A stretch of DNA of 64,000 nt. Origin: Oculina patagonica (taxonomy: Eukaryota). The first letter of the stretch is position 1. Each line of letters begins with the position of its first letter. Under the pieces are notes generated by a model, which worked only from the letters and a program-made list of their open reading frames with translations, ran no database searches and was not told the origin of the DNA. This document shows, one piece after another, positions 24,554 to 58,335 of this stretch. Location: NCBI RefSeq assembly GCF_052425735.1, contig NC_135764.1, forward strand, positions 20,336,001 through 20,400,000. The letters run 5' to 3'. The position numbers and the translations under genes were made by a program.

Positions 24554-27500
24554 CTGACTGATTGATTGATTGATTTGGTGGAATAATCGAGTGAGTGAAA
24601 GACTGAAGAAAAGTTACCAATGGCTATGAAAAATAACTCGAAACATTCGCCACAAATAATCACACATCCTCAAGTTATTGGCTCGGTGGATCAGAGAACA
24701 GTAGAGAGAACTTTCAACCCATGATATTTGTTTTCTGTTTATTTTTAAGGCTTTTAGCGCCGGTCATGACGACAGCGAAGGGCATACAATGAACGTCTAC
24801 AAGTCCTGTGTAATCATGGCAGGAATCTACGTGTTTTTCATGATAGAGTGCACAATGAAAGCGCGCATGGCACGGAAGAAGCGCCCAGGAGAGCACGTGC
24901 ACACGTGTGACAATGTTACATCTCCAGACAAAATGGTATGACACTCTACTGATTATATAACCACGCACTAGCAAAGAAACTTTTTCAGGCCTTGGTTTCT
25001 CGCTATGTCCAATGTTACTGTCAACCTTGTTCCCAGGGCTTTTCCCTGGGAACGAGGTTGTCTCACTGTACACTTACCTTAACGCGTGACAAGAGAAGTA
25101 GACACGCCTTCAGTCCAGATTCTTTCCATTGCTTGTCACGCAATAACATGCTTGTTACGAAATAGTGCGTGATAAGTCATTTGTATGTTTGTAAAGGAGA
25201 CCAGTAGTTTATTAAGAGAGTAGTTTCATCCAGCTACAATGAATACCTTAGCCGTCACTATACCCTTTGAGTTGTTATTTATCATAGTCAAATCTCTCGC
25301 TCTGGTCCACCGTTTATTCTTATACACGGAAAACGTATTACCTTCACTTCGTTATAAATTAAAGCAATTTTTTTTTTTGATCACAATTTTTTTTTTTTTT
25401 TTTTTTCCTCCTCTCCTTTTTTTTTTTTTTTTTAAGAGGTGGGATGTGGATCATATATCGAGTCAACATGACGTTTGACAAATCTCTTAAGACATACCTC
25501 AAATTTCCAAGGTTTCTGTACGAACTACGATTAATTCCAGGTTCCTTTTGTTTATTACAATACAGAGCCTTAGCCAAAAAGAGAAACAAGCCGCAAAGTA
25601 TCAAGAAATGATTGGTTCACGGCTCGCTGGAATTCAACGATGTATCAGCCACGACGGCGCGCACTTTCCAAAAGTCAGCGGTGACATCTCTGAAGGCTGT
25701 AAACCAACATCATGTGAACTGGTCCTTGTGGAGTCTGGGAGCGAGGAGCGTGCCAGCACTAGGTCCGGGAGCTCCCAAGAAAAGGAACCCTTGTGGCAAC
25801 CTAGTTGCCATGGCGACCATTGCCATCAACGGGATAGTCTGGGTGAACGTAGCAAGCACAGTTTTAGCGACTCGGAACTTGTGGCTGTTTTACAGGGCAA
25901 GTCTTGCATCAGGCCCAACATCTACACCAACAACAACTTTTCTGCCAGTGGTAGCGATAGCGATAGTCAAACACATCACAACGTCAATCAAATTCGCCGT
26001 CACGATGGTAACCAATACTCGTACCCAGTCCCCGCTGAGACGACAACCATTACGACGGAGACGACATCAAGAAGCGACAGTGGAGATGGCAGCTATGAGG
26101 ACGAACACGAGCAGGACGACCACCAGCATCATCATCATCACCATCACAGCCACAATATTGATAAGACCACCTCAATTGCTACTGTAGCGTGGATGGTGAT
26201 TGTGGGTGATGGCTTTCATAACTTCAGTGATGGCCTGGCTGTTGGTGCTGCCTTTTCGGCGTCACTGACCAGCGGTCTTACTACAGCGATAGCGGTGTTC
26301 TGTCACGAACTGCCTCATGAACTAGGTAAGATTTGGGGGAACAGCGGGCCAATGCACCTGTCAATGTTGCCCAGGGTGGGGGTGGGGGGACGGGCGGAAT
26401 GACATCTGAAGTGTCCCGGGTGGGAGACATCAAAATGGTCCTGGAGAAAAAGAGAAGAGAGAATGACATTCACTCTGCTCCAGAAGTCTCCGCGCCCGCC
26501 CCCCCACCGGGGAGACAGGAAAAAAAAGAAAAAGGAAAAACAGAATGTCTCTGCCCAGAACAAAGAGGTGGGAGGAAACGGATGAAAAGAGTTTAAGTGG
26601 TTCACGTCAATGTAGGATTTTTGTACCTTTAAAAACCTGGCGTTCTTTCTTTCGCGTATCGAAACTATCAACGGCCGTACGGCTTAATCAGCTGTACAGC
26701 TCCATCAGCTATGCAGGCCTTGTTTCTCATAAGGGACGGTTCATTTTTTATGAGATAGGGGGGCTGGTGGGATTTGAGGGGGGGCCATCCGAAAAAATTT
26801 GGCTTTAAAGGGGGGGTCAGCCAAAAAAATATGGTCTGTAAGGGGGGTCACTTAATATAATGGTACTGTTTAAGTGTTGTAAAGAGACTTCTGTAAGAGT
26901 AAAAAAAAATTTGGCAGATGCCCAAAATAACATTCCTGAGGTCCAAAATATTTTTCGCGGGGGAGGGTGCCCCCGGACCCCCCTACTTTGTTATGTACCA
27001 AATGCCATTAACTCAACCCAACAGCTTCTTGGTTACAAGGCAGACAACCCATACTAACAGACGACATCCACAATAAACAGTTGAGGAATGCCAGCTATTT
27101 GGGATGTGTTTTTTGTACACTGATAAATTCTTTACTCACAAGGCTCGATATATTTTAATTTCACTTGATAATTGTTTTTTTTTTTTGGGGGGGGGGGGGG
27201 TCATCGAAAAAAAAATTGATTTCGAGGGGGGGCCAGGCAAAAAATTTCGATGAATGAAGGGGGGGCCATTATATATAACAGTGACTATCTATCAAATCCC
27301 ACCAGCCCCCCTACCCCATAAAAAATGAAGGTCCTCTAAAGTAAGGGTTTCCTGTAATTTGTTTTCAATAATTCTGTTTTGTGGCATTTGAGTTTGAAGG
27401 ATATTAGCTTATCACTTTTGTATATATGCTTTTCATGAGGGAACTCTAAGCTCAGGAGTGAAAAGACAAACCCGTTGTTGTAACATTTATTTAATCTGTT

Positions 27501-28666
27501 TCAATTCTTCTTTTAAATTTCAGGCGATTTTGCAATTTTGCTCAAGTCAGGTCTTACCTTTAGACAAGCTCTAACCTACAACCTTGCGTCTGCCGTAATC
27601 TCTTACATTGGCCTTGTGCTGGGCATCATTATTGGTGATATACAGTCCGCCCATACATGGGTCTTGGCGCTTACTGCTGGCATGTTCCTTTATATATCAC
27701 TGGTTGATATGGTGAGTAAAACGGTGTTGTACTTTCCTTTGTTTAAAGGGCTAAACCAAAAGAAAAGTAATCATCCCATCTACCTATTATCACAACAAGC
27801 GCAACTAACAATAAACCATCGATGGGATATAAAACTGCAAACTAGCCTGCGTAGCGACAACGAGCGTTTTCGCTTTCTTCTCCCTAGGCCCCTCACGGCT
27901 TCGCCTCTCGTTGTCGCGGTTTCGCGGCTTTCTCGCGCGCGCGTTTAATTAATAACCCAACAAAACCACCAGCCACGCAGGCTAACTGCAAACATGCAAG
28001 AGGTACGGGAAACCATTAAACCTTACAGCCTGGTCCCAATTGGGGGAAATGTACCGTAATTCAAGTGAGTTAAACGACTTCTGAAGGCCAGTATGAGGTT
28101 AAACTGAGAAATGATGCGTTTTTTAACTGCAAAATTTACTGATATCTGAGAAATGGGCTTCAGTTCCAACTCATAGCTAAGAAATAGCCGAAAATTTAAC
28201 GGATAACTAAGATTCCATCACTACCATGCAGAACTTCAATTCTTGTTGTCTGAGGGGTAGTAAAAAAATCGTTTTAATAAATGATCTCTTGTTGATTCCT
28301 CCAAGGTGCGGATTTTGAGGCCAGTTCTGTTTATACTTCGCTTCTGAAACTTTTTCGTTCAGTTAAACTCGCTCCCAGTCGCTTACTTGTTATTAAAAAG
28401 GCGGAGCCATAGAACATAATGCGAGAGGAACGAGCGGTATCCTGGGAAGGCGAACGAAAAACTAAGGTAGAATGAAGAGGAAATTTTGCTTTCTTTGAAT
28501 TATAAATGTTTTGATATTTTTTTTTTGTTTTTTTTTTCTTCAACAGCTTCCTGAACTTAGCAACTTCATAAACGAAGGAGGTGGCTGGTCGGTAGTTTTA
28601 TCTCAAAATATGGGTATATTAACAGGGGTATCTATTATGCTCGTTATAGCTTTATATGAAAGTTAA
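16749..28666 (+). CDS. Zinc transporter ZIP, LIV-1 subfamily (ZIP6/ZIP10/foi-like), 697 aa, 7 coding exons
   Basis: Exons 16749-17240, 22393-22570, 23993-24162, 24750-24935, 25566-26325, 27524-27711, 28547-28666 (2094 nt, GT-AG, phases consistent). Signal peptide, CPSLIRQL ectodomain motif, [21 protein letters not shown], His-rich loop, [29 protein letters not shown] and [17 protein letters not shown]39A family is secure; the exact ortholog is not assignable by eye. Confidence 0.95.
18647..18686. repeat. (CTG)n microsatellite in ZIP intron 1
   Basis: About 13 ctg units; the poly-Cys/poly-Ala ORFs over it are artefacts. Confidence 0.9.
19011..19177. mobile_element. Short MITE with TTAA TSD (Kolobok-like termini)
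   Basis: ttaa|aggagc ... gctcct|ttaa. Confidence 0.55.
19955..20354. mobile_element. PIF/Harbinger-type MITE, same family as 29471-29783
   Basis: Starts ggccaagtaaaaaa..caaatgtttct and shares the internal gacctatccagtac..gacctagcgtaccaagg block; right end degraded. Confidence 0.7.
20445..22205 (+). repeat. Diverged tandem duplication in ZIP intron 1 (units ~20445-21515 and ~21524-22205)
   Basis: Shared blocks include ttttttatagcttgca.ggcc, ttatttattagattcactaata, taccaagtgt.aaaatggt, agctggaactc and gtgtagaatattat..ttttaattgccggcggcatttaa. The second unit lacks ~350 bp. Confidence 0.8.
22732..22894. mobile_element. Short TIR element
   Basis: caggccgtactta ... taagtacggcccg. Confidence 0.5.
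24220..24575. repeat. Compound tetranucleotide microsatellite (AGAC, GAAT, GACT, GATT) in ZIP intron 3
   Basis: Runs are directly visible. Confidence 0.9.
25022..25060. mobile_element. 39-bp minimal hairpin MITE with degenerate 9-bp TSD
   Basis: caaccttgttcccaggg-ctttt-ccctgggaacgaggttg; flanks tgttactgt / tctcactgt (7/9). Confidence 0.6.
26733..27336. mobile_element. PIF/Harbinger-type MITE with TAA TSD
   Basis: taa|gggacggttcattttttatgagataggggggctggtgggatttga ... tcaaatcccaccagccccc..taccccataaaaaatgaaggtcctc|taa. Confidence 0.75.
27843..27984. mobile_element. Hairpin MITE with TAG..CTA termini and 9-bp TSD
   Basis: tagcctgcgt..acgcaggcta; perfect TSD actgcaaac at 27834-27842 and 27985-27993. 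Confidence 0.8.
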
Positions 28667-35534: not shown

Positions 35535-37445
35535 GTGACACTACTGTTTGTGTTTTCGAATAAAGAAATGTACAAGAATATCAAAAGGGTCTTATTGTCA
35601 TAAAGATATTGATCGAAGTAATGATCTACATTTAAGTTCAAAATAAACCTAAATCTACCAGCTCATTTGTTTATTTCATTGTCTCTGCAGCTCAAAATGG
35701 TGAATTTGAGAAATTTGAAGGGTTTTGAGTTCGCTGTAACTACATTGTACATTATAAAAGGAGAACTACACATTTTTCGACCAGTCCTACCAATTTTTAC
35801 CCAGAATCACCCAGCTTCGAAATCAAACACCAGAGAAACTAAAAAAGTGATCCTTCAAGATTCTTGTATCAGTCAATCTGATTAATACATATACAACTAT
35901 ATGTACAAAATACAAAGACAGATCCAAATTATTTTGAAAGAAATAGTTCAACAAATTATATATATTAAGTTCACACTATTCTTTGATGACATATTTTTTT
36001 TTATTTATGTTGACTTATTTGTCATTGTAGTATGCCACAGTTGAAAAGGATGATGAAAAGTACATGACACCAGTGAATCTGATCCGAGACTACCTCGGAA
36101 TGCAAAAAGTTGAGGAGTACAACCAAACAACTTTGGGTCTTCTGGCAGGATGTGTTGACCAAACAAAAGATGGGTATGATAGATTTTTTTAGTGCAATAA
36201 TTAATTAATTTTTAAAAAAAAACTAGCTGTGATATTATAACAATTCCTGATTGGTTTACAGGCCATTATGGACTACAAAATAATATGTTAGGTGTACATG
36301 TCAGCGAAAACCATCAGGAGCTCAAATAATTATTGCAATTCTTTAAGCGTTTTTATAAAACAATTACCGTAAACACCCGCGGATAAGCCGCACCCGCAGA
36401 TAAGCCGCAACCTGAGTTTAACAACTCAAATGTTGGAAAAAAAGTTTTGGAGAGATTTTCGCACAGCCCCATACATTAATTATGTATGCAACTTTTTCAT
36501 ACTATCACTATACACAAACAGCAATCATGAAAAGAACGAGTCAGTCAGAAGATTGTATGCATAATTAATGTATGGGGCTGTGCGGAAATCTTGCCAAAGT
36601 ATTTTGAAAGTACCGGTAAATGAAGAAAATCCACAGTCGAGTCAAAAATTCAAAGTTGAGTCTCAGGAAGTCTTGATGATCGAACGTAAACTCAATGAAC
36701 ATTGAAACAGAAAATACTTCAGTCTTACCCACAATTTGAGCTCTTTAATATAATGAAAACCAACTTTGACACATTATGGAAGATCTTCTTCTGGCATTTG
36801 TTGACAGGTATTTCTTCATGCAACGCAGTTTTTCCATAGATTTTTGTGTCACAACAACAAGAACTTGCGTTTGCCGAACGTTCGTAGCTTAGTAACCAGG
36901 CATTTGATCGGACGCGAAATATGGGACTAGGTCGAGAACGTACAAAGCAAAACAAGATGGCGGTGGAGGCCTTCGGGTTTCGTGTCCATCATATCAACAA
37001 ATTAAAGAGATTTAGGAGCCATCTATTGGAGATAAACTTGTTGCATGAAGAGAGTTCCATAATCAGTTCGACAAATTTTCCATCAAAGTGCAAAATGAGG
37101 AAGAAACAATTGGCCATCTTACTCGTGAATACTCGTGGTATTTTCTCGCTCGTGAAGTATCAATATTACTGTTAAAGTTATAGGGCATTGTCGAGACTGC
37201 AAACAGCATAGGAGCTGTTAAACTTGCAAAAGCAATGACCGGTACTCTCTTGTAGTTTTATGTTATAACCCCGCGGTTAATTTACATAATTTTCCATAAA
37301 TTAGCATCAGTTAACGAAAATTTACGGTACCTTTTCCGAATGTTCCCGCAGATAAGCCGCACCCCCGCTTTCGGCAAAATTTTTTGGAAAAAGTTGCGGT
37401 TTTTTTGGTTTTTGTTTTTCCCTCTCCTCCCCTTCTTTCTTTTTT

Positions 37446-37476
<31 letters not shown>

Positions 37477-40400
37477 CTCTTTGGTACTTTTTTGTGTTTT
37501 TTTTTTTTTTTTTTTTTTTTTTGAGCTGAAGCACAGGGTACTACAACAAAAGAAATCACATGGAAGCTTTGGGATTAATTAATCTTTTCTTCTGTTTTAG
37601 TGCCCTAAGCCTCGACACAGTGTTCAATTTATATACCACAATAATAATACTGGTCTATCACAGTACATAACACATTGTACATGTACATCTCAATAAGTCC
37701 TTGCATATGACTAAAATTCTATTAATAATTTATTGTGCCCAGGGCTATAATTCTGATTATTGAGACAGTGTATTTTTTGTGTCTTTGTCCTTTACAGCTT
37801 GATCTCATTTAGTGAATTCCTGGCATTTGAGGCTTTATTGTGTGACCCTGGAGCTCAACACAAGATTGTTTTCCAGCTCTTTGACTTGGATGGCAAAGGA
37901 TCAGTCACATTTGGTATGCTTTTCTGTTTCCCAATTTTAACTATAAAGTTTTCTTAGCAATTATTATTGTGGGACAAAGGGTTTACATGTAGAGTTTGCC
38001 CTGTTGGCCATAAACTAAGTGTATTAAAAATACTGCAAAAGGCTAGCTTCCTACGCAGATGTTCTTAGGGCTCATCATGCCTTTCTCCGCTATTAAGAGA
38101 AATGCGTGACGAGCCCTTAGAAACATCTGCGTAGGAAGCTACATGTAGCAAAAAGCATATATATAACTGAAGTTTTTACTGCAGTTGCATTTGCTAGTAA
38201 GAGTTTTCTTATGAAATTGTTATTGTTTCGTGCAGATTTTGTTTAATCAGAAGTCAACTGGAAACTGTCCTTGGATAGTTATGAGACGATGACTGTATGA
38301 ATTAAAAAAATAAAGAATTTGACAGAATTAATTAAAAAGTGGTTGCACTTTTGGGCTCCATGGTGTAATGAGTTTTTAATTTGGAACATGATGAAGTGGT
38401 TCAGTTGTTATCCTGATATTGAAGGTCACAGTTACATTGCAGGACAGTAAAAAGACTAAGTCCTGTGTTATGTGTATGTTTTCAGATGAATTTGAAAATG
38501 TCATCAAGAAAACAACTTTCTTCAACAAAATAAAATTTAACTTTGAAACTGAGTTTGTGAAGACGTACTTTGGGAATGACAAGAAGACACATGTTCGTTT
38601 TGATGACTTCTCACATCTGCTACAGGTTTGTGATTTTCATTCCTTTCTCTCAGCCTCACAAAACTTTCGTGCGATAGCATTTTCAGTGTAGCATTGTCTT
38701 ATTTGTGGCACAGAGGCGTGGTGTCCTAATGGTTAGTGCACTGGACTCCCTTCAGATCAAGCAATCTGAGCCAAGCCCTGGCCAGGTTCTTTGTACTGTG
38801 TTCTTGGGCGAGACACTTAACTCTTGCAGTTTATTTGTCCTTGCAGGTGCTGGGGGTACATGTAATTCTTCAGAGGGTGTAAAATACTCCTGGTTGTGTG
38901 ATGTTACAGAAACCAGGATAATTATTAGCTCTGTGTAAAGGACACTTTGGCCTGACACACACTTATCCTTTATCTGAATTGCATGCAAGAAGTCATCTAC
39001 ATGTACTCTTATTACAGCTTATTTGCTGGTACCTATTTATACACTGGGTAAAGAGAAGCACTATCAGTGGCAGATCCAGACCTTCAGATAAGGGGGGACC
39101 CTGATCTTCCAGACCGTAGAATAAGGGAGGGGCCCACTCTCTAAAAAATAATTTTTTACGGCCCCTCTGGCCTCTATTTAAATTCTAAAAATTAGGTGGT
39201 GGCCTGGTCTCCCGGGTCCCTCCCTAGATCTGCCACTGACTACATGTATGAGAGTAAAGTGTCTTGCCCAAGAACAAAATGCAGTGACCCTGGCCAGGGC
39301 TTGAACCCAGACCACTCAATCCAGAGCCCAGTGCGCTAACCATAAGGGCACCATGTCTCCCATAGACTGGAAGGGTGGTTGAACATTGTTATTCTGTTTT
39401 AATTTCAGGATTTAGAAAAAGAATACCAACGGCAAGCCTTTTTCCAAAGCAAAATGCCTGATGGAGAGATAACAGCTGTTAAGTTTGCAGAGATCATGAA
39501 AGTTCTGAGAGGACACAAGCTGTCTCCATTTGTGAGAGAATACCTTTTAACAGTAAGAACTTGCTCTTTTTACATGTATGTACATGTACTCTGTGTTATA
39601 GCACATGAAGCGCACCAGCAGAGCACCATGGGTAACAAATTTTGGTAAACCCATCAAGCCAGGAAAATTTGGTAGTCACATCGAAGTAACTAGTAAGCAT
39701 CAGTTATGGCCAGATGTGACAAACCCGCATCCATCCATCTGTACAAACTCTCAGGGAGGTGGAGGCGGCGGAAAGGGGAGTCCCAAGATAACTAAACAGG
39801 GGGAGGTGAATGCCATCTTTTCTAAGATGGTTTTGTAGTGACTCAGGTCTCGGAAAAGTGTCTATTATCTGTATTAAGCAGGTTAATGTTAGAGAAAATG
39901 TTTGAGCCTTTTGTCGGGACAGACAAAACTGTCCATAATAGGCAGGTGTCCATAGAGTGGGGTTCCACTGAACCTAAAAGTGTGCATTAGACATTAGACA
40001 AACTTGTACACTGAATTTACAGTGTGGTTTTATGTACGCCTTAACTGTTGGAAGAATTGTTCCTTAGTTGTAAGAGTCAGTGGCAACCACTAGAGGAAGA
40101 AAGCTCTCCATATGTGGCACCATAGGCACAAGCTTCTTTGCTACAAAGACAACAACAACAACCATTTTATTTTGTCAGAATAAACATAGGGGATAGCACA
40201 GCATAAAACATTAACTTAAAAAAAAAATAAATAGCCAAAAAGAACTACTCAGAATAGTGAAAATTAAACAAGCTGAGTAGTTTCAAACATATATAATTTG
40301 ACTGGGTTGAACGTGTAGCACACTGAAGGATATGGGCAGTTGAATATTGACAGTTTCTCATTCATTACTCGCATATTAAGACAAGAATAATTGTCGTTTT

Positions 40401-43400
40401 GTTTTTGTTGTAGGCAGCTAGTGGAGAGGGTGGCCATCGTGTGAGTTACGGTTATTATAGGGCATTCAATACAATGTTAGACCATGTACAAGTTCTTCAC
40501 AATATGGCACTGAAAGCTGCAAAAGGGAATCGCTTCAAGGAGCTCAAAAAAGGTACAACAACCAGTCACTTGTATTCAACTAGAATAAAATGTACCCAAT
40601 TAGGTACCCCCCCCCCCCACTCCTTTGAAAAGCCCCTCCCCCCCCCATATGAATTTCGAAAGACTTCGTTGTTGTGGATATGAATGTTTCCTGGAACCCC
40701 ACAATACACCAAGATGTAGTCCACATTTGTACATAAACCACGGGCACCCATCAAGAATATAGTTCAAAACCACTTAAAGATAGCACCGTTGACCGTATTT
40801 TAGTATTTAAACGGTAGATATAGGCATATTTTTATCCCCTAAAAAATTTTCATCTGTTCGGATTTTCGTAGCTGAAAGTCTAGTGATCCAAAAGTTATAG
40901 GGATCAAAACTTGCCTTTTCGAAAAAATTCCAGCCAGAGAAAGGCTCCCGAAAATTCTAGGTGACCATTTTTTAGATATTCGAAAATCCTAGGAAAGGCA
41001 GGCAAGCAAAAAAATTTACAATGAATGTTCTGAAAATTCTAGATCTCAAATCGTCTACCGAACAGATATTTTAACGAAATATTCCGTTGGGTGCCCCTGA
41101 TAAACTCATGCTTCACCATTTATATTTATTTCAACAGACCTTCAGTTTCAAACTGATGATTACTATTGAAATTTCCCTGTTGTTAAAACCAACCTTATTT
41201 TGGCCAAGTCAATCTCTTCTTGCAGTTTTACAAATTTTCCTTTGTGAGCAAACAACGGGGAAAGGAACTTTCTGAAAATTACTTTGCACTTTGTAATACT
41301 GCCACACCACTGACCTAATATCACGTCATTCAAAATGGCCCACTGCAGACAAGAAAAGTCTGTTTTCCGCTGGATACATAACTATAAAATGGACTTTGAG
41401 AAAGCCTTACATAAAAACTGGCTCATGCATGTAGGGCAGTCAATTAGTATAGTACATGGCAATAGACCGGCTACAAATATTATCACAGGGAGCAGAGAAG
41501 CAAAATTTGACTTTTGATCTTTTTCGTGGCACTTGCCATTCATTATCCGATCTGTTTGTTTACACCAAGATAAGAATCTTCAAGTCCAATGTCATAGCAG
41601 TGCTTCTTTACGGGTGTGAAACCTGGAGAATGACCAAGGGGGGGGGGGGAAAAATAAAAAACTTTTTAAAAAATTTTTTAGGGGGAAAATAAAAAAATTA
41701 TGGGGAAAAAAAAGAGTAAAAAAGGAAGGTAAAAAAAAAGGAAAGGAAACGAACAACAAGAGAGAAAAAAAGGGGGGGAGGGGGGGGGAGGGGAGGGTTT
41801 AGGGCCCCCACAAAAACCCCCCCCGCGCACAAAANNNNNNNNNNNNNNNNNNNNNNNNNNNNNNNNNNNNNNNNNNNNNNNNNNNNNNNNNNNNNNNNNN
41901 NNNNNNNNNNNNNNNNNNNNNNNNNNNNNNNNNNNNNNNNNNNNNNNNNNNNNNNNNNNNNNNNNNNNNNNNNGAGAAAGGGGGAGGGGGTTGTTTATGT
42001 GACGATTAGCCTAGTAGACTAGGAGCAGTCCCTATTTTTTCGTCCCCATTTTTCGCAAGGTCATTTATTTTTTCACTTCAGCACACTTAACGGACTGTGC
42101 AAAAAAATAGGGACTGCTCATAAACTGTTAGCCCAGGGGGAAACTCTTTCAACAATTTGTTACATAATCCCAGCGGGTAATCCTTTCTGTACGAAAAGCA
42201 TAAGCTTTCTGAGCACAACAGGATAAAATGCTTAACAGACGCCTTAACAAAAAGATCCCAATGTATGACAAAAGCACGATAAAGATCCAATATTTTAATA
42301 GTCACAAAGGTCAAATTTGGCTCTTCTGCTCGCTGTGATATTACGACTAACCCAATTTAATGCAGTGAACACCCAGGGAAGGCCATCTTAAAAATTGCGA
42401 CTGCATACAATGCACTTTCATCACGCATGCAGCTTTTTCAAACCTGACAGCCCTGGTCATTGTAACTCATCAATTTTTAACCAATAGGCTCAAAATCTGA
42501 CTTTTAAAAATGTTAAGGAATAAAATTGTTTATGCAGGTCTCAGCTAAATAACCCGTTTTGTTTAATCCACCTTTAGTTGACATCTTACATGAAGCCAAA
42601 GCTGACTCGGAGGTATGTAATTCTGTACAGCAAAGACATTTTACTTGTAGTAAATACAGTTGAATCCTGATAACTCGAACCCTCAGTAACTCGAACTCCC
42701 GCTAACTCGAATCTTTTTCGATTCCCCTTCAGGTCATTTTCTTACTAATTTTACCCTCGATAACTCAAACTCCCGTAATCTCGAACCTTTTTTGATTTCC
42801 CTTGAAGGTTCGAGTTATCGGGATTCAACCGTACCTGTACAATATTTTTTTTTTTGGTTTTTAGTTACAGAAGATAGCTGGAGCTGTGTACGGAAATGTA
42901 CATGAAACTGTGGAGTGGGTCATAAAACTAACGTTGTTATTTCCTCATGCTAGAAAAATTCATCCACTTTCTTTTTTTTTTTTAATTTCAGATCACTCCT
43001 TTAGTTATTGACATTCTTTTCCATCTGTGTGACTTGGAACACAGAAGAGGGTAAGTGAAGCTACACTTATTTCACCCTGCAAGTACATGTATATAGAACA
43101 TCAATATAAAAACTAATAAAGGCAAGATAGGTGAATTCAATGTTCAAGCCTAGTAGCCCATCAGACCAGAGCTAACCCTGGCTCCATAGCATTAAGTGAC
43201 TACTAGGATCGAGTTCTTCTACTCCTCCCTGGATGGTATGTTCTCTGGTGCCCATTTACACACGTGGGTGGATAACACAACACTGTGACCCTGGCCAGAC
43301 TGCTCTGAATCTGGGGTCCAGTTAATAACAGTTAGGCCACCACCTCCTCCACTATTGAGAATCAAAATTTAGTCCAAGATTAAGGGACAAACTGTTTCTG

Positions 43401-46400
43401 AGTGAAAATTGGCAATGCAAAAAATACTTTTCGTAAGAAAATAATTTAGAGTACATTTAGAGTGATGTAGTTTCTCACTCCAAAATCCCGACAGTAAAAG
43501 GCACTGTGGTGAGGAAGACAGGCAACAAGGAAATATGGAAAAGGCACTTAACAATAATTTTGAATACATTAACTTCTATTTGTTTCAGACGTGTCACCGT
43601 GTCCGATGTGCATCAGATTATTCCCCGACGTGATGTGTTTAAAGTGTTCTCTACAGAAAGAATTGAGGAAGAGGTATGAATTGTTTATGAGCTTTGGAAA
43701 ACTGAATACACTTACTTGCTACAACTGAATACAGTACACTTACACGTATGTAAGATATCCGAATTACAGTTTTCCATTTTTTAGCGGAGCTCCATCGCGC
43801 AAAGCGTGCAAGTGGAACACCGTGGATAAGACATTTTGGTAACTTGTTGATGCGAGAAATCGTGGTTATGACGCCACCGTACGCCATCCAAATGTCCGCC
43901 CGTACAGACTCTAGGAGAGGGGAGGGGAGACCAAAGGCAACCGGGGAGGGGGAAAAAAACGTTTTTCTTGGCAGCAAAATAGTGGCACATTGTTCATTTT
44001 GTAAGCTGAATGAAAGCCGTAAAGAAAGCAGAAACACGAAAATATTTTTTTTGTAAATATTCCCCGTTGTATCTCCTCTAAAGTGTCCTGTATAGTGAAA
44101 AGTTATGACAAATGATTTAAGTTAACTGGAACATCCGAAATCGAAATAATCGCGGAACTAATCAAAAGATCTTGTACAAGTCTAAAGGAGCGAGAGCTTT
44201 AGCATTTTCTACTGTTCCCATGGCTGACAATTAATTGCGCTAACATAAATATTAGCTCAGAGTCGATCAAGTTCACTGAAGTGAAGGACAAACGACTTGA
44301 ACTACTGACAGTGACCTGGATGGAGAGTAAGAGATTGACCCTCACAGATTAATTTACATATAAAAAAAATTATCCGGGTAGTAAAACATTCTTATTGGTA
44401 CATTTATGTTCTTGGCCTAGTTGTTAAATAAGGCTGTTTACTGATTAGTCGTACAGTATACATTGTAGCATTAATGTTATGATAGGCGAGTACTGACTTC
44501 CTAAAATGTTGCAGATGATAGTGGAGCCCAAAGAGGATCAAGGCTCTATATTTTGGAAAGCAGTAGAGCAGTTTTATCGATTTGGAGTTGGATCTGTGGC
44601 TGGAGGTAAGATGTTTTTTTTTTTTTTATTTCCAACAATGATGTGAAAAAACTGCTAAACTTTGCCCTGGGGATTTTGTTGTGTTTTTGTTCCAAAAAAC
44701 GAAAAAGGTCGCGATACATGAGCCACAAAGCCGTATATGCATGTACAAAATGTATACACTTTTTTTGCTTTGTCAGTGAGCATCCTTTTAAGAAAAAAAA
44801 GTCATGAATTTATAACATTTTCTTTTTAATTTTCTATAACATTTCTTCAAATATTTATAAAGTAGGACAGTCGGGGTGAATAGTTCTAAGGGAGGTACTT
44901 AGTGTGCGAATAGTTATTGTGTTGGACACTTTGTGGAGAGGCCCAAATTTCAATGTCTTTGGGAAGCTGATACGTGGGCTGACCATAATAATAATTGAAA
45001 ATTTGAGACTGCTTTGGGACTTATCTGTGTAGCCCTCTTTGCTCCGACTGTACATAGAACCCGGCATCAGGAAACTGATCAGAATGGACCTTTCAATAAC
45101 ATACCAGTTTCCATACCAGTGTAACATACCAGTGTGCACTTTTTAAAAGCTACAGCGTGCTTGGCACTGACTTGTGATGTTTTATTCTACAGCGGCGGGT
45201 GCGACTGCAGTGTACCCCATTGATCTGGTAAAGACTCGAATGCAGAATCAGCGAGCTGTCCTGCCTCATGAGAGACTGTATGCCAACAGCTTTGACTGTT
45301 TTGTCAAAGTCATCAGAAATGAAGGCCCAAGAGGACTGTACAGAGGTTAGACATGTACTTTATGAAGAGGAGGCAGGTCTCTTGCGAATGTTCCTGCAAC
45401 AAGTCCCGTAGAAAAGTCGATTTGTGTAAATATCCTATTTTTGTTATAAAAATCTATACGCAAGGGCCAAAATTTGGTCCGTGTGACTTGTCCCCAATTT
45501 GAGGGAGCTTAAGCAGACTACGACAGCAACGTGAACGAGAACGTCACTAAACAAAAAAGTTTAATAAGCAGAATAATAACTCTGCGAGTGCGTTATAAAT
45601 CTTTGTACATTTCGTGGCCGTTCTCTGCAAAACAACAACGGCGGTTTAACGCACTCTTTACTTATTCAGCTGGAGCTACATGTAGTTTCTAAACCAATAG
45701 ATACACTGAACATACCTGGATAATCACGAGATTTTCGAGTAAAATATAGATTCTTTTTCACTGGGCGTTGTCCTCGGCGTCGCCGTCGTCATTGCTTAAG
45801 ATTCCTATTACTGAACGAAGAACAGTCAGCTCCCATTATAATATAACGGACACCTTTAGGACCACAAATTTTTTGTCCATAATAGAAGAAGTCATTGTTA
45901 TAGCGAGGTCCGCAAGGCGGGAGTTGCCTGTACTGATGGTAACCTTGAATATTTAGTAGCTAGGCCTGTAGAAGCGTATGTGGGAATTGATTTTTACCAC
46001 TAATAACGTGGACGTTTTAAGGCTTCATATTATGATATTTTTGTTCTCAGGATTACTGCCACAGATTGTTGGTGTTGCTCCAGAAAAAGCTATTAAATTA
46101 ACGGTAAGCTTAGACTACGAGCAGTCCCTATTTTTCGCAGAGTAATTTCGCTTCAAGCTCGACGGACTCTGCGAAAAAATAGGGACAGCTCGTAGTCTAC
46201 GGTAAGCTAAGCTCAACGTGACTGACTAGGTAACGAAAGAATGCGTGTGTATTTTACATAGCATTTTGTCTGTGACTCATTTTGAAGGCTTTTCTACCTG
46301 TTTTCATTGCCTACGTGTAAATGACACTTGTGAAAAGACTGTTGAAGGCCCAATTAATCCTCTTTAACTAAACCTCTTTTTGCTCCTCCTAGACAAACGA

Positions 46401-47437
46401 TTTTGTTCGTGATGTGTTCCGTGATAAAGATGGTTTTATCAGCTTACCGTTCGAGATTGTGGCTGGTGGATGTGTAAGTACATTTTGAGGCAGTGACAGA
46501 CTTTTAATTATGTTACAGCTGAATGATAACAAAAGTTGGGACGCTTTGGGAATGACAATGACTAATCCCTTCCCCCTTGCCACAGATACAAGTAAATAAA
46601 ATCGGCTTTGTTTAACGATCGCGAAAATTGCAGTAACACGTAACAGTCTAGCGACTGACAAACCTGTCGCCCTCGGATTTCCGATCGAATCGGAATTTAG
46701 AAGTGTTAGTTTTTATGGAGGGACGAAAACCGGAGAACCCTGGGAAAAACCCTAGGAGCAAGGACGAGAAGCAACAACAAACTCAACCCACATATGAGCC
46801 GGGTCTGGGAATCGAACCCGCGCCACATTGATGAAATGCGAACACTATCCCTGCCCCCAGGAGCAGGGATAGTCTCGCCACAAGAGATCGTGGATTTTCA
46901 ACTGTGAGATTGACAGGTTGTCATAAGGGAATTGTCCCAAGATCACTGTTTTGATCCTACATTACACCAGTATTATAGCTGGAGAGAGGGAAATGTTGGT
47001 ACACAACAATCTTGGTTGCCTAGCAACATGACGTATTCTCATTCCGTCATGCTGAGGTGACATTTAATAATTGGCGAGAAATAGTCGGACATGCTTGGAG
47101 TGCTTCAACGAAGCATGGTCTGAAAGGTGAGTGAAGTAACCACTCCCCCCGGTTTCATTGGTGTTTCTGATCATTTCAGGGAGGAGCCGCCCAGGTTCTC
47201 TTCACCAATCCTCTGGAGATAGTTAAAATCAGGTTGCAGGTGGCTGGGGAGATTGGAGCTACTGGTAAAGATAAGGTGACGGCCATGCGAGTCATTAGGG
47301 AACTGGGACTGACAGGACTTTACAAGGTATTCATCCACTGATGTTAGTTATTTTCTTTTTCAATAAAACACGCTGCCTCCTCCACCGGCGTTTCCACGGC
47401 CGATGAGCGCGGATTCTGGAGAGTCGCGAGTGGGAGG

Positions 47438-47501
<64 letters not shown>

Positions 47502-50500
47502 GCTTTTATTTATACACGATAAATATTGCAGCATAATAGCTGATGTGGTCGTGTCTTATGAAAATAACAATAAATTAAGAAATCAATAAACTACGCTAAA
47601 TCATTAGAGTCCCTAGATGATACAACAGATTTAAAAACCATGTTCTATTAATGAACTTTTGAAACCCGCCAAAGATTCTTCAAGGCGGGCCTCATTGTCT
47701 AATGAGTTCCAAAAAGAGGCCCCTGCAAATTTAATTGACTTCTTAACAAAGTCCGTATTAGGCTTGGGAAGCACCAAGCAGTTCTTTCTTCTTAGATTAT
47801 ATCCGCTCTCTTGTTTTGACCACAAGTGACGTAGGTGGGAGGGAGCATCTCCGGAGACGCATTTGTACACTAAACAAAGTATCCGTCGAATGTACATTTG
47901 CTTTAAAGACTTTCACTTGGTTTTCAGTAAATACCTCATCTGAGGGGGTAAGCCAGTCGAGACCGTAAATTCAACTTGGCCGCACGTACATGAATCTTCT
48001 CAAGTTCACTAAAAATTGCTGCACCACACGAACCCCAGACAAGCATTCCATACGTAACAGAGGGTAAAATTACTTTAAAATAAAAGTCAACCCTTACTTG
48101 AACTGGTAAAAAATACAATGATCGCAAGAGGTTTAGTTTTTTAGTAAAGCATTTGCACAATTCCTTGACGTGAATGTTCCATTTGAGCATATTGTCAATT
48201 TTAACACCTAAACACTTTGCGGAGTTTACATGATTAATGTAATTGTCACCATGTTTAATGCCTTGTAAAGGGCCAATGAATGGTCCACGCTGTAAAAACA
48301 TATATTCTGTCTTTCCTGGGTGTGGTGTGAGGGAGTTATGGCAACACCAGCGATATAACTCGCGAAGAACAGAATTCAAGACGCTAGCTACCTTGTCTGG
48401 ACTTGGGGACGCGACGTAGATAGTGGTGTCATCAGCATACATGTGTAGCTCCCCTTCTCTATCGTCTATTATGGTAGGCAGGTCATTGCAAAACAGAGCA
48501 AATAGGATTGCGAGCAAGCGCGTAGCGAGAGTGAGAGGATTGGGGCGAGCGCGAAGCGCGTGCGGTGGGTACCTTTCCTTTCCTTCCCGTGTCTCCCTTC
48601 GCCCCGCTTTCCTCAATAATTAACTAGCATTTCTCCCAACGATCGCTAGCGACTGGGGACGAGGCAGTAAAACACGATCAAATGTAGGAGCCCATTATCC
48701 GGAGCGTGCAACTTCCGTATATTTGTGCAAAGGCGTTTTCACAAGTAAAGTTATTTTTAGCAAAGCCTTCCCGCAAAAATTACCGCTTCCGATGAAGTCA
48801 GCTACTACTTTGCGACGAAATACTGAAATCATTGCTTGACATGCTGTCAGAACACTACGAAAAAGTTTCCTCGCGTGTATGCGCAATGGTAACTTCTCAG
48901 GTGGACGAGGTACTGTAGTTGCGTATCAACAGTCTATTGCAAAATCGCGTGTGATCAGTTGGCTTTCCGAAACCAATTCGCGGGCCGAAAATATTAGGGA
49001 GCTTTAGCAAACCACGACGGCAACGTGAACGAGAACGTCACCAAACAAAAGATTTAATGAGCAGAATAATAGCTATGCACGTGCGTTTTCAATCCTGGTA
49101 CATTTCTAGGCCGTTGTCTGCGAAACAACAACGTGAAATGACCAAGTTCTGCGTATATTGGAGAACGTGAACAATGACAGCTAAATTTCCGTATTTCTAT
49201 TTGGGGATGAACGCTTTTTTTACATATTCAGCTTGGGCTAGTTCCTAAACCAACAGAGAGAGATTCTCGAGTAATAAATAAATTCATTTTGCACCAGGGG
49301 TTGTCCTCGGCGTCGCCGTCGTCATTGTTAAAGCTCCCTAATCTAAAGATGACTTTACTTGTGAAAACGTCGTTTCACAAACGCAGTATGGAAGTTGCAC
49401 GCTCCGAGTAATGGGCTCCTGTCAAAGTTTAACATCCTTGAACAGGTAAGTGAAAACTTTTCAAACCTCTCCCTCATGTTGGTGACATGGTTCTTCATTG
49501 TTTTTCTTGTCCAGGGTGCAAGAGCGTGTTTTTTGCGAGACATTCCATTTTCTGGTATTTATTTTCCGGCCTACGCCCATCTCAAAGGGTACTTCGCACA
49601 CGAAAGTGGTCAAACTGGAGCTGGTGGACTATTTGCTGCTGCTATGATTGCTGGTAAGAGCAATGTAATGAGAGATAACCTGGTCAGAAAGTGACCCTCT
49701 AAGCTCACTGTTACCTCCTGTAACCATTTAAAAAAAAAACGTATAAAACAGATCTTAAGTGTTAAAAAGGAAAAACAACTGAATTTTCGACTGCGTTCTG
49801 CGGTCTTTTTCAGAGAAATGACTGCAAGAGTAACAGAATGTAAATTTTGCCCCCCTAGGGAGGCAACCAGCAAGGCATAAACCCCTGGGAAGGGCGCTCT
49901 TTTATTAACAGAGTTTTGTCCAGGAATAAGTGCAATGACTCTAGAAATAACCGTTTGTCCTTGTTATCCACGCCTGTTTCCAGAATGCTCGCGTAATTAG
50001 GGTGTATGTCGTGGCCAGTGGTTTCGGCATTTCCCATTTGTTTTTGTTTTTTTGTTTTCCCATTTGCTTTTTTGTTTTTGTTTTTCTTACCCCATGTAAC
50101 GTTTGTTAATTGTCTTGTGTTCTTATAGGTGTACCTGCAGCAGGTCTGTGTACCCCAGCTGACGTTATCAAGACCAGGTTACAGGTAAACAAGCGTATCT
50201 ATATTTTCTATTGAAGTGTACACAACAGCGTTACGACCGACTGACAAGAGGAGACAAAATATTTATTAACTCATGTGTTTTGTGGTATGCAGGTTAAAGC
50301 CAGAGCAGGTCAGGCAGTCTACCGTGGGGTGATTGACTGTACAAGAAAAATATGGAAGGAGGAAGGAGGCAGAGCGTTTTGGAAAGGAGCAGGAGGTCAG
50401 TTTGTTTTCAGCTTTTCTTTGTGAAATCTTGAACTGGCCGATTCAATTCGCCCTAATGGACTGGTGTGTGTCTGCTTATTTATCCGGGACATTAGACCTT

Positions 50501-51494
50501 TCCCGCCATTACCTGCAGGACACGCGGCGCCAAGCTTTGCTGTGATTGGATGATTTAAAAAGAAGTCGCGGGTTGATTGGCTACAATGTAGCAAAGGATC
50601 ACTGAAGAATCGCCCTCTGTTTTAATAGGCTGTTTTGGTTCGTGACGAAATCTTTTCCCAAAAGGATTGCGTGAGAGGCATCAAAACTTTTGTTTACTAT
50701 CAGTGAAGTGTAAGGGCAAGAACATGCAAGGGTTTGACTAGTGCCAGTTGAATTTCGTTTTACTGTTAACTTTTCCTTGTCTGTTTTAGCTCGTGTTTTT
50801 AGATCTTCGCCTCAGTTTGGAGTCACGTTACTCACGTACGAACTTCTTCAGAGAGTGTTTAAAGTGGATTTCAGTGGAAAAGGGTGAGTGTGAATCTTCA
50901 AACACCATTTCCTTCCTATATTGAAACTTCTATTTTGGAAGCAAACATCTTTACGCTGAATAGAGACTGAGATGACCCCATAAGAGGTTAAAATACAGTT
51001 GTAACTGTACTTGCCAATCTTTTACCCAACGACTGCGAGTTTCCGGTCAGCAAGAAGTGAAAAAGGTTCTTCTCTGATTGGTAGCAGCGCGGTGCATGGG
51101 TTTCATGAACAGAACTTTGACAAAGTAAACCCAATGTAAAACTCTATTTCGTTTTTCGGTCCTGTTTGGGGTCTGTTCGTTCGTCCATACTCACGTTTGG
51201 GTTCCGAATTTTTCGTTTGCTGTTTTCTTCTTCTTGTTTTAAACCAGTATTTAGAGGTTTTTATTTAGCTTTAAGACCGTTTCATTTTCTTTCTGCAACA
51301 GAGCGGTGGTACACGAAGCCTGGAGTGAGAAAAGATCGTTCAACCCAGACATATCCATGCATCCTGACCACATTGGCGGCATGAGACTGGCCGTGGCCTC
51401 GTTTGCAGGCATTGAGACTAGGTTCGGCTTGTGCTTGCCCAAGTTCTCTCACACGTCATCGTTTCACACTTCAGGACAAAAGAAAGTCACATGA
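34030..51494 (+). CDS. SLC25A12: Calcium-binding mitochondrial aspartate/glutamate carrier (aralar/citrin), 699 aa, 20 exons
   Basis: Exons 34030-34107, 34239-34289, 36031-36173, 37798-37913, 38486-38625, 39409-39552, 40414-40552, 42578-42612, 42992-43050, 43589-43673, 44515-44605, 45193-45345, 46051-46103, 46393-46473, 47180-47326, 49515-49653, 50129-50184, 50293-50395, 50790-50883, 51302-51494 (2100 nt, phases consistent). EF-hand DQTKDGLISFSE; carrier motifs [30 protein letters not shown]; [24 protein letters not shown]; C-terminal [20 protein letters not shown]. Likely co-ortholog of SLC25A12/13. Exon 1 is the least certain. Confidence 0.95.
35135..35445 (+). mobile_element. tRNA-derived SINE with CORE-like central domain
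   Basis: A box tggttagcgcg, B box ggttcgagccc, then caagacactttactctcacagtgcc..ccacccaggtgtataaatgggtacc; three more copies in this window. Confidence 0.8.
36367..37327. mobile_element. Tc1/mariner-type non-autonomous element (ta|ccgtaaa ... tttacgg|ta)
   Basis: TA TSD, short TIR and subterminal ataagccgca repeats; CpG-rich relative to the surrounding intron; followed by low-quality sequence. Confidence 0.55.
38044..38141. mobile_element. Hairpin MITE with TAG..CTA termini and 9-bp TSD offset by a CATGTA insert
   Basis: tagcttcctacgcagatgtt ... aacatctgcgtaggaagcta; gcaaaaggc (38035-43) / gcaaaaagc (38148-56). Confidence 0.8.
38712..38975 (+). mobile_element. tRNA-derived SINE, CpG-decayed copy
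   Basis: Aligns to 35135-35445 (tggttagtgcactggactcc, agccctggcc, tgtgttcttgg..agacactt). Confidence 0.7.
39015..39361 (-). mobile_element. tRNA-derived SINE (antisense) interrupted by a TIR element at 39065-39238
   Basis: gagagtaaagtgtcttgcccaagaac..ggccagggcttgaacc..gcgctaacca; nested cagtggcagatc..gatctgccactg. Confidence 0.75.
40739..41099. mobile_element. TIR element with 6-bp TSD
   Basis: ataaac|cacgggcaccca ... tgggtgcccctg|ataaac. Confidence 0.65.
41560..41640 (+). mobile_element. RTE-clade LINE reverse-transcriptase C-terminal fragment
   Basis: [21 protein letters not shown] is characteristic of RTE-clade ORFs; runs into low-quality sequence and the gap. Confidence 0.7.
41835..41973. 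other. Assembly gap (139 N) preceded by low-quality purine-rich consensus
   Basis: N run. Confidence 1.
42015..42127. mobile_element. Hairpin MITE, same family as 46111-46199
   Basis: tagactaggagcagtccctattttt ... aaaaatagggactgctc. Confidence 0.7.
42657..42831. mobile_element. pogo/Tc1-type MITE with CAG..C(C/T)G ends and TA TSD
   Basis: ta|cagttgaatcctgataactcgaacc ... ggttcgagttatcgggattcaaccg|ta; internal taactcgaa repeats. Confidence 0.85.
43135..43350 (-). mobile_element. tRNA-derived SINE, antisense and decayed
   Basis: Reverse-complement similarity to 35135-35445 (ctactcc..cctggatgg, cccatttacac.c.tgggtgga, ccctggccag). Confidence 0.6.
45503..45805. mobile_element. Harbinger-type MITE, copy 1
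   Basis: gggagcttaagca..cgac.gcaacgtgaacgagaacgtcac ... cgtcgccgtcgtcattgcttaagattcc; colinear with 48997-49338. Confidence 0.8.
46111..46199. mobile_element. Hairpin MITE whose 9-bp TSD duplicates the exon 13 splice donor
   Basis: cggtaagct|tagactacgagcagtccctatttttcgcagagt ... actctgcgaaaaaatagggacagctcgtagtcta|cggtaagct. Confidence 0.9.
46662..46858 (-). mobile_element. tRNA-derived SINE of a second family, antisense
   Basis: Reverse B box (gggaatcgaaccc) and body aaaaccggagaaccc..aaaaccct.ggagcaaggacgagaa.caacaacaaactcaacccaca. Confidence 0.65.
47373..48667. mobile_element. Hairpin MITE with 9-bp TSD hosting a LINE insertion
   Basis: taaaacacg|ctgcctcctcc ... ggggacgaggcag|taaaacacg. 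Confidence 0.8.
47441..48503 (-). mobile_element. 5'-truncated CR1/L2-group LINE (RT fragment) with (ATT)n tail
   Basis: [29 protein letters not shown] then, after a frameshift, [14 protein letters not shown]; tail 47441-47500; flanking aggatt at 47435-40 and 48504-09. Confidence 0.9.
48997..49338. mobile_element. Harbinger-type MITE, copy 2 (TWA flanks)
   Basis: tta|gggagctttagcaa ... ttgttaaagctccc|taa. Confidence 0.85.
49690..50030 (-). mobile_element. Penelope-like retroelement 3' fragment (GIY-YIG endonuclease C-terminus plus degenerate hammerhead)
   Basis: [33 protein letters not shown] matches the GH..IL..R..ES pattern of Penelope endonucleases; downstream ctgaaaa-agac..gtc-gaaa. Confidence 0.65.
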
Positions 51495-57300: not shown

Positions 57301-57402
57301 TACCATTTTCGAAGATACATTTTTCGGCGCGAGATTGTTCAAGAGCTCAAAGGGAACAGTGAACTTTAGAAAAACACCGTGCTGCTGAAAACACACACGA
57401 TC

Positions 57403-58335
57403 ATGAACAACCCTATCTGTAAGGAAACCCTGCCGTTAATCTATCCAGCGGATACTGAAGCTAAAGACTTACATTCATGGTACATTGCGAATTGTGTATT
57501 GAACGCTTTGCTGGCCATTACCGCCATCGTGTTCAACGGCGTCACAATCCAGGCGCTAAGAAGAACTTCATCGGTGCCAAAGCCTCTAAAAACATTGCTT
57601 CTGAATCTTGCTGTTTCTGATCTTGGTGTTGGATTACTTGTCGAACCTCTGTATTTTGGGATGTTGGTCAGTTGGGCACGGGGAAACGATTTAACTGGCT
57701 TTACATGCACCACGCATCTCATTATCTCGTACCTATTTGCTGTTCCTTCATTTCTCGGAGTTATGTCTTTAAGTGTAGACAGATTCTTGGCAATTCATCT
57801 TCCTTTAAGATACATAGAACTCGTGACTCACAAGCGTGTTGTTGCTGTGGTGATCTCAATATGGGTGTTCAGTCTATCTCTTTCGTTATTCCGGTGGCTT
57901 GGCTCAAGGAATGTTACTTACGCGTTTATTGCCATTATTGTGATAGTTTCCTTTGCCCTCTCAGCGGTGCTTTATTGCAAGATATATTTAGCCGTACGAC
58001 GCCACAGAAATCATATTAATGCCTTACAAGTACAGCAAGTAGCAGAGAGTGACGAAATGACAAATTTTGCAAGGCTAAGAAACTCCGCTCTCGATACATT
58101 TTATGTATATCATGTGTTCGTGCTCTGTTATTTGCCACATATCTGTGCAAGGTCTTTTTTGGTTGTTAAGATCTCTGCCTTAAGTACTGGTGTAAAAGCT
58201 TTTTCCATTTGTGCGGCGACTCTCTTGTTACTAAACTTATCTTTGAACCCTGTTATTTACTGTTGGAAGATAAGACACATTCGACAAGCTATCATGGACA
58301 TACTGCGACGAAATATCTTTCCAAGTCACAACTGA
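57403..58335 (+). CDS. Intronless class A (rhodopsin-like) GPCR, 310 aa, ligand unknown
   Basis: Seven hydrophobic segments; TM1 N, TM2 LAVSDL, TM3 SVDRF, TM4 W, TM6 CYLP, TM7 LNPVIYCW. First ATG at 57403. Confidence 0.92.
   Translation: MNNPICKETLPLIYPADTEAKDLHSWYIANCVLNALLAITAIVFNGVTIQALRRTSSVPKPLKTLLLNLAVSDLGVGLLVEPLYFGMLVSWARGNDLTGFTCTTHLIISYLFAVPSFLGVMSLSVDRFLAIHLPLRYIELVTHKRVVAVVISIWVFSLSLSLFRWLGSRNVTYAFIAIIVIVSFALSAVLYCKIYLAVRRHRNHINALQVQQVAESDEMTNFARLRNSALDTFYVYHVFVLCYLPHICARSFLVVKISALSTGVKAFSICAATLLLLNLSLNPVIYCWKIRHIRQAIMDILRRNIFPSHN

Follow-up and report, generated by a model that had tools for sequence, protein, structure and literature searches.

An intronic cluster of a TA-flanked octamer, a probable Tc1/mariner-type excision scar, in an aralar/citrin gene of the coral Oculina patagonica

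The octamer cluster and its genomic background

We analysed a 64,000-nucleotide stretch of the Oculina patagonica genome (assembly GCF_052425735.1, contig NC_135764.1, positions 20,336,001 to 20,400,000; hereafter the window), in which the octamer TACATGTA is crowded into a gene for an aralar/citrin-type (SLC25A12/13-like) calcium-binding mitochondrial aspartate-glutamate carrier (Table 1). A pattern search returned 12 matches, at 18008, 19204, 37678, 37984, 38140, 38857, 38998, 39241, 39571, 39581, 43084 and 45677, which are exactly the positions listed in a prediction made earlier from the window's letters alone (the original prediction). Only 0.78 would be expected, and none of 100 dinucleotide-preserving shuffles reaches 12. 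Ten of the matches lie within 8,007 bp (0.91 expected) and eight within 1,911 bp (0.22 expected), the latter being 37 times the genome rate (Poisson P ~1e-10); a Poisson model would put the number of 1.9-kb windows of this density in the whole genome below 1e-4. All ten clustered sites are intronic and there is no exonic TACATGTA in the window, so the suggestion that the octamer adds two codons in frame to exons finds no example here.

The best Protein Data Bank matches of the carrier exons are Aralar1/2, in order: the earlier exons match Aralar1 residues 74-112 and 117-159, the exon at 40414-40500 matches human Aralar1 residues 209-237, and 42992-43051 matches Aralar1 residues 267-284 (weak, yet the only hits obtained). 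The exons on either side of an assembly gap are collinear with Aralar1, which places the two flanks of the gap in a single gene, correctly ordered and oriented. The span between 39588 and 43084 is no more than an estimate, and additional octamers or a small exon could lie in the gap, but no conclusion depends on continuity across it.

Contigs of four other coral sequencing runs (X1, X2, X6 and X8) were compared with the assembly over window 37600-41800 (4.2 kb). The sites at 37984, 38140, 38857, 38998 and 39571/39581 are carried by contigs of independent runs and are thus not an assembly artefact; most of the cluster sites are common to three organisms.

Table 1. Features of the locus (window coordinates, except where a sampled locus is named by an L number)
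Feature	Position	Strand	Remarks
Aralar/citrin-type carrier gene	36031..50884	+	EF-hand and three Mito_carr exons
Carrier gene exons include	37781-37915, 38485-38627, 39409-39553, 40414-40500, 42992-43052, 45193-45347, 47171-47338, 50275-50400	
CpG-depleted stretch	37001..42000		CpG observed/expected (o/e) 0.25-0.60 per kb, against ~1.0 in most of the window; the window's most CpG-poor part
TACATGTA	37678..37685		Intron, ~100 nt upstream of the exon at 37781
TACATGTA	37984..37991		Unique intron sequence; present in X1 and X6 (records span it without a 6-bp gap); no outgroup, hence unpolarised
TACATGTA	38140..38147		First TA is the right terminal TA of the 98-bp MITE
TACATGTA	38857..38864		Within tRNA-derived SINE copy 38690..38960 (+); not a clean +6
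TACATGTA	38998..39005		Intron; present in X1, X6 and X8
TACATGTA	39241..39248		Splits the right ACTAT of the 174-bp element as ACTA-CATGTA-T
Two TACATGTA	39571..39588		2 nt apart (TACATGTA-TG-TACATGTA), 18 nt downstream of exon end 39553
TACATGTA	43084..43091		32 nt downstream of exon end 43052
TACATGTA	45677..45684		Inside a dispersed repeat; derived +6 at TA
TACCGGTA sites	36611-36618, 6623-6630; L002:581, L003:6832, L005:8300, L005:8683, L006:3175, L017:9659, L019:5794		36611-36618 is ~1 kb upstream of the cluster
98-bp miniature inverted-repeat transposable element (MITE)	38044..38141		Terminal inverted repeats (TIRs) TAGCTTCCTACGCAGATG...; TAGCTTCC...GGAAGCTA; limits backed by 70 genomic hits (query 25-122)
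174-bp TIR element	39065..39238		CAGTGGCAGATC...GATCTGCCACTG; limits from 40 genomic hits (query 26-199)
TA-flanked 175-bp Tc1-like MITE	42655..42833 (element 42657-42831)		CAGTTGAATCC ends
Assembly gap, 139 N	41835..41973		Within an intron; length only estimated

The 529-Mb assembly contains 60,197 copies of TACATGTA, or one per 8.8 kb and 7.3 per 64 kb, so that a background of about two per window, as first proposed, was too low and the window as a whole stands at 1.6 times the genome rate. A count against an order-3 Markov background in 264-354 kb of sampled sequence gives a 7-8-fold excess, and, homopolymer-like and simple words aside, TACATGTA is the top over-represented octamer there. 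The TA flanks matter, since CATG flanked by other letters (AACATGTT, CACATGTG, GACATGTC) occurs in the sample about as often as expected. About 50 of 61 sampled sites have mutually unrelated, diverse and non-repetitive flanks. Genome-wide, the excess comes to ~52,000 copies over ~37 million TA dinucleotides (0.14%); it is a property of the whole genome and not special to the aralar/citrin gene.

Six-base insertions at TA

At 45677, TACATGTA is confined to this copy of a dispersed repeat: all 30 other copies (copy 2 at ~49239 and 29 genomic ones) read the GAGC-TA-GTTCC type with a plain TA, so the octamer is a derived +6 at TA. The comparison with copy 2 was already part of the original prediction; pairwise alignment gives GAGC-TACATGTA-GTTTC against GGGC-TA-GTTCC in copy 2, and the 29 further copies polarise the difference. 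An unselected case emerged from an all-against-all comparison of the 354-kb sample, in which the six letters are present at L023:1151 and absent from its 91%-identical duplicate, L025.

Two octamers of the cluster abut TIR elements. The 174-bp element sits in a reverse-oriented short interspersed nuclear element (SINE; 39020-39061 plus 39251-39370), and of its two ACTAT direct repeats the left copy (39060-39064) is intact and the right one is split; removal of the element, one ACTAT and CATGTA brings the host SINE back to consensus length with one substitution, confirming the split target-site duplication that had been proposed at 39241. On the right side of the 98-bp MITE the terminal TA is followed by CATGTA and then by gcaaaaagc, which matches the left flank gcaaaaggc at 8/9 positions, an arrangement just as described beforehand. 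By comparison, the copy at 38857, put forward as a further empty-site control, did not hold up: the SINE there reads GGGTACATGTAATT, while both the consensus and the 35311 copy read GGGTACCGGCGAATT and not the supposed gggTA-a, and the change at 38857 exchanges seven nucleotides for six, which is no +6 at TA. In all, three to four of the ten local sites are individually polarisable, and a derived +6 at TA is seen in three repeat families and one segmental duplicate.

Among the 61 sampled octamers, three abut a TIR-element end (window 38140, window 39241 and L009:5858). At L009:5858 the abutting 245-bp MITE has CA..TG ends (TACATG-TA-CAATCATTG...), which looks like a re-insertion of the element at a scar of its own.

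Insert lengths were tested chiefly on a conserved stretch of the SINE in which two TAs adjoin, GGTG-TA-TA-AATGGG (site 2), allowing at most three flank mismatches. Plain TA-TA is found in 6,115 copies and a 6-bp insert in 41. TACATGTA results in 22 of the latter, eight at the first TA and 14 at the second; the tally of +CATGTA in repeat copies advocated in the original prediction is thus 22 scarred against 6,115 empty copies. The chance of a random 6-mer being CATGTA is 1 in 4,096, and TACATGTA dominates the 6-bp spectrum, the other inserts being one that is a single substitution off TACATGTA, three TACCGG/TACCAG, one TACGTG, and a remainder of mostly AT-slippage. Five-base inserts occur in 14 copies, three of them TACAGTA, and 4-bp inserts in 37, many of which are TA-repeat growth and five TATGTA; these five all lie in one duplicated region of contig 3 and are probably a single event. 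Enrichment of TACAGTA/TACTGTA in the sample is only 1.4-2.2-fold. At a third TA of the SINE (site 1), three copies carry a 6-bp insert, namely CATGTA, CATGAA and one tandem duplication. The scar frequency in SINE copies is 0.13-0.23% per TA, matching the genome-wide 0.14%, which suggests that TACATGTA arises by independent hits at ordinary TA sites.

Slippage or tandem duplication of a TACATG/ACATGT-type hexamer, or simple-repeat growth, is a scarcely plausible origin. The six letters of 37678 are missing in X1, X2, X6 and X8, and the site is formally GTACAT x2 against x1 in those runs; ATG-TACATGTA contexts occur, the mirror word ATGTACAT is above expectation too (23,921 copies in the assembly against 60,197 of TACATGTA), and most other 6-bp insertions in repeats are tandem duplications. 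However, 37678 is the only site that fits: at 45677, L023:1151, 39241 and the SINE sites the inserted CATGTA does not repeat adjoining sequence, and the 61 sampled sites have diverse, non-repetitive flanks.

Passive copying of repeats with TACATGTA in their consensus does occur, in that a dispersed family (L005:5977, L014:8829, L038:2856) and a tandem array (L006:2737, 2869 and 3004) carry the octamer at a fixed position, and the 14 plus eight SINE copies could be subfamilies. As the general explanation it is very unlikely, given that about 50 of the 61 sampled sites have unrelated flanks, that the consensus of both large families tested lacks TACATGTA, and that the per-TA rate in SINE copies equals the genome-wide rate. 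The array is a ~135-bp tandem repeat (L006:1934-4255, - strand) with the three octamers at the same position, inside a 774-aa open frame that has no Pfam match and lies beside an SNF2-type helicase exon (L006:721-1143); TACATGTA may be coding there.

Candidate source elements and the excision step

We consider it likely that TACATGTA is mostly the scar of a cut-and-paste transposon of the Tc1/mariner superfamily, made up of the TA duplication and two nucleotides from each element end. The +6 events at TA, the SINE insert spectrum and the presence of transposases all support this idea, which formed the core of the original prediction. At least 92 DDE_3 (PF13358) transposase matches exceed the Pfam cut-off, most of them without stops and in 345-387-aa open frames. 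Groups with identical scores and uninterrupted 353-, 374- or 387-aa frames (C1:45201306, C5:18781657, C7:16270874, C11:5674528 and others) suggest recently copied and possibly autonomous Tc1/mariner elements.

TA-flanked TIR elements that start CAGT or CAAT and end ..TG were found at L012:4319, L014:5993, L009:5864 and window 17803; none starting CATG was seen in 354 kb. The MITE at 42657-42831, to which CA..TG ends had been ascribed, in fact ends CA...CG. Its TIRs (left CAGTTGAATCCTGATAACTCGAACC, right CGGTTGAATCCCGATAACTCGAACC as reverse complement) differ at two positions, both CpG to CpA/TpG in the left arm, and the family by this reckoning probably ends CG...CG, so it is not an obvious source of CA-TG scars. 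The 354-kb sample contains no copy of this MITE, the 98-bp MITE or the 174-bp element.

In the route we propose, an element would insert at TA and duplicate it, and would later be excised in the germline by a 2-nt staggered cut, such that the terminal CA stays on each flank as a 3′ overhang. The host would then join the ends while keeping both overhangs, giving TA-CA-TG-TA and a net +6 bp. Such scars would be neutral and would have accumulated at roughly 0.1-0.2% of TA sites. We infer the step from excision to scar, because we found no locus with the element still in place in another allele. Tc1 and Tc3 cut 2 nt inside their 5′ ends.

Footprints of Tc1/mariner elements offer several points of comparison. 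The canonical Sleeping Beauty-type footprint is TAC(A/T)GTA, a +5 with 3-nt overhangs; the coral scar would share the superfamily, the logic of target-site duplication plus end nucleotides and a stereotyped product, but the +5 TACAGTA is a minority in the coral (three of 14 five-base inserts). The Minos footprint is 6 bp, four terminal nucleotides plus TA, and so has the net +6 at TA in common with the coral. A Minos-like 4-nt stagger at a CATG end would religate cleanly to TACATGTA and explain its uniformity, although the coral CA..TG elements start CAGT or CAAT. In Caenorhabditis elegans, Tc1 inserts at TA and leaves footprints of TA plus terminal nucleotides, the common scar being a +4, TATGTA or TACATA, in 73-78% of somatic events (PMC12632400). 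The C. elegans Tc1/Tc3 footprints and the coral scars share the TA target and the retained duplicated TA and, on the proposed route, would also share the terminal CA/TG left behind and end joining; unlike the +4 of C. elegans, the coral SINE site has 22 +6 copies against one +4 event. A comparison of Oryza sativa with O. glaberrima found 8/94 excisions to be 'perfect' and the others to have deletions or filler (PMC4423477). That catalogue likewise treats excision scars as a class of fixed mutations and includes Mariner/Stowaway at TA, but no single word marks excisions in rice, whereas in the coral a single octamer would stand for tens of thousands of them, countable even when no outgroup is at hand.

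A second palindrome of the form TA-XY-Y'X'-TA, TACCGGTA, ranks second of 136 TA-NNNN-TA classes in the sample (nine seen against 1.7 expected, 5-fold), with unrelated flanks at its sites. It is probably the scar of a second family with CC..GG (mariner-like) ends; its enrichment, together with the TACCGG/TACCAG inserts in the SINE, fits families with other terminal dinucleotides leaving like scars. Seven of the nine TACCGGTA sites lie at most 1.5 kb from a TACATGTA. We rejected co-clustering of the two words, since its significance was lost after setting aside ascertained loci.

Might CATGTA be added without any transposon, by a nuclease or topoisomerase break at TA followed by templated fill-in? 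No filled allele was seen at any scar site, and the scar is far more uniform than the transposon scars of rice or C. elegans (PMC4423477, PMC12632400), both of which would suit such break-and-repair. The co-occurring TACAGTA, TATGTA and TACCGGTA inserts, however, are classic combinations of Tc1/mariner ends with TA, and transposases and matching element ends are present. We know of no process that gives TA-CATG-TA, and we regard this origin as very improbable.

Several observations weigh against a transposon scar all the same. The uniform +6 needs explaining, because the C. elegans scar is usually +4 and rice scars are heterogeneous; it would require either host joining that keeps non-complementary overhangs or an element with a self-complementary CATG overhang. 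CA..TG elements are present, yet none is tied as a family to the scars, and the nearby 42657 MITE ends CA..CG. The three alleles (empty TA, filled element and TACATGTA) were nowhere found together at one locus, and across the four runs and 4.2 kb there is no filled allele at 37678 or 39690 despite TA/+6 differences at both; 37678 can, besides, be read as a tandem duplication of GTACAT. The 22 scarred SINE copies might stem from two small subfamilies and not from as many separate events. Only nine of the 61 sampled sites are comparable with a paralogue, of which two are +6, several are inherited in repeats and one is a point change. One TA of the high-copy repeat at 40800-41070 has no 6-bp insert in this genome, in a set of copies whose number was not measured. 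Finally, A at -3 and T at +3 are significantly frequent around TACATGTA compared with all TA sites of the sample (46.7% and 46.4% genome-wide), but the mirror-word control is nearly equal at 44.7%; the bias is non-discriminating and was therefore not used as a Tc1-type target preference.

Clustering, CpG content and the age of events

TACATGTA is over-dispersed beyond the window. Its index of dispersion at the 10-20 kb scale is ~2 over the first megabase of contig 1, where 23 gaps between octamers are shorter than 1 kb against nine expected, with a maximum of five per 2 kb. Eight of the ten clustered sites in the carrier gene fall inside the CpG-depleted stretch. Two dense clusters on contig 1, chosen for their TACATGTA density, have a median CpG o/e of 0.40 at sites against 0.72 in the background; with the window included, the medians are 0.40-0.42 at sites against 0.72-0.98. 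Both contig 1 clusters are in gene bodies, one beside an SNF2-type helicase exon and the other in a coiled-coil protein gene. The 23 isolated octamers in unbiased loci show no link to CpG-poor DNA (0.95 against 0.95), and the link is thus a property of clusters, not proven genome-wide. Strong targeting to the gene body, as originally envisaged, is only partly supported: the local density is extreme, but the cluster is limited to the CpG-poor 5′ part of the gene (37-44 kb) and the excess is genome-wide.

The same CpG depletion invites the explanation that, in a gene body carrying methylation, deamination of methylated CpG turned TACGCGTA, TACGTGTA or TACACGTA into TACATGTA with no change in length. 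The cluster does occupy the window's most CpG-depleted part, TACACGTA/TACGTGTA are mildly enriched (2-fold), and one TACGTG insert at the SINE site and one TACACG insert in a second organism are on record. Against this, the sibling double-decay products of TACGCGTA, TATGTGTA/TACACATA and TATGCATA, are at expectation, single-step precursors are ~4 times rarer than the product, and the polarised cases are +6 length changes at TA. Because the siblings are not enriched and the polarised cases change length, CpG decay, which the original prediction had named as the outcome that would refute it, is itself largely refuted as the main source, and we hold it to be extremely unlikely.

Gene-body clustering, together with the position of several sites 18-100 nt from exon ends and the perfect palindrome of TACATGTA, could also speak for selection on a motif that, for instance, binds protein or RNA in the introns of widely expressed genes. 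Yet the stereotyped +6 occurs at random TAs of SINEs and other repeats at the genome-wide rate, for which no function is needed, isolated sites are unlinked to CpG-poor DNA, and the literature searched yielded no known factor; selection on the octamer is accordingly a most improbable cause.

The other runs bear on the age of the events. One organism (B, run X6) has its own +TACACG at the TA after 39690, giving TACACGTA, a lineage-specific, variant-type +6 inside the cluster. In X6 and X8 (organisms B and C) 39580 is A instead of G, so that the spacer between the paired octamers is TA there and TG in the assembly; by its letters, 39571-39588 would fit an original TATATA hit twice. The difference at 37678 is possibly an assembly error. 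Events of different ages within a 2-kb stretch favour a long-lived hotspot over one burst, and a single burst of local hopping is less likely as the cause of the cluster, on this small sample.

Further differences were noted between the assembly and these runs. Fifty bp from the 37678 indel, at 37725, seven letters of an AT-rich run are missing in all four runs, and the assembled haplotype near 37678 differs from the other runs by two indels and no substitutions over ~240 bp. One X6 contig joins 39061 to 39246 via a single A (GCAC-A-GTATGAGAG), without the 174-bp element and most of the scar, and a second X6 contig continues into the element; the join, whose shorter side fits over 27 letters only, could reflect an excision allele in organism B or a polymorphism for the presence of the element there. 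In each of the four runs the summed contig depth over window 40800-41070 exceeds the single-copy level by a factor of thousands, with the maximum in X8.

The clustering at this locus is genuine; open germline chromatin and methylation-enhanced excision are possible causes among others. Under a transposon origin, the ten sites would be scars crowded in the CpG-poor, presumably germline-methylated and germline-transcribed 5′ part of the aralar/citrin gene, which may have been a recurrent hotspot of insertion and excision over a long time. Methylated donor elements of Sleeping Beauty are reported to excise more readily. Tentatively, and with more doubt than confidence, we extend this to the genome: TACATGTA, with TACCGGTA, might be a countable fossil record of ~50,000 germline excisions, piled up in CpG-poor, germline-methylated, transcribed gene bodies as long-lived insertion/excision hotspots, possibly through readier excision of methylated donors.

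The carrier gene is preceded by a ZIP zinc transporter (window 26001-27945, + strand; exons 26001-26330 and 27517-27700) and followed by a single-exon rhodopsin-family seven-transmembrane receptor of 321 aa (window 57370-58332, + strand).

Excision footprints are textbook knowledge, usually seen one locus at a time and variable in sequence. The mechanism proposed here is of a known kind; its scale, uniformity and clustering are, as far as we found, without earlier report in the literature searched. On this reading a single octamer, the strongest k-mer anomaly of this genome, stands for fixed events in the tens of thousands and provides a simple gauge, free of outgroups, of the amount and place of cut-and-paste traffic in a genome. 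It also defines a type of mutation (+6 at TA, ~0.14% of TA sites) to be anticipated when variants are called, or k-mers and motifs analysed, in coral genomes, and hints that coral end joining treats non-complementary 3′ overhangs unlike that of nematodes and plants. A possible tie of transposon traffic to gene-body methylation or germline expression is testable. If it is true, scar density would read out ancient germline chromatin state, and in-frame +6 scars would time and again have added two codons to the genes of coral proteins.

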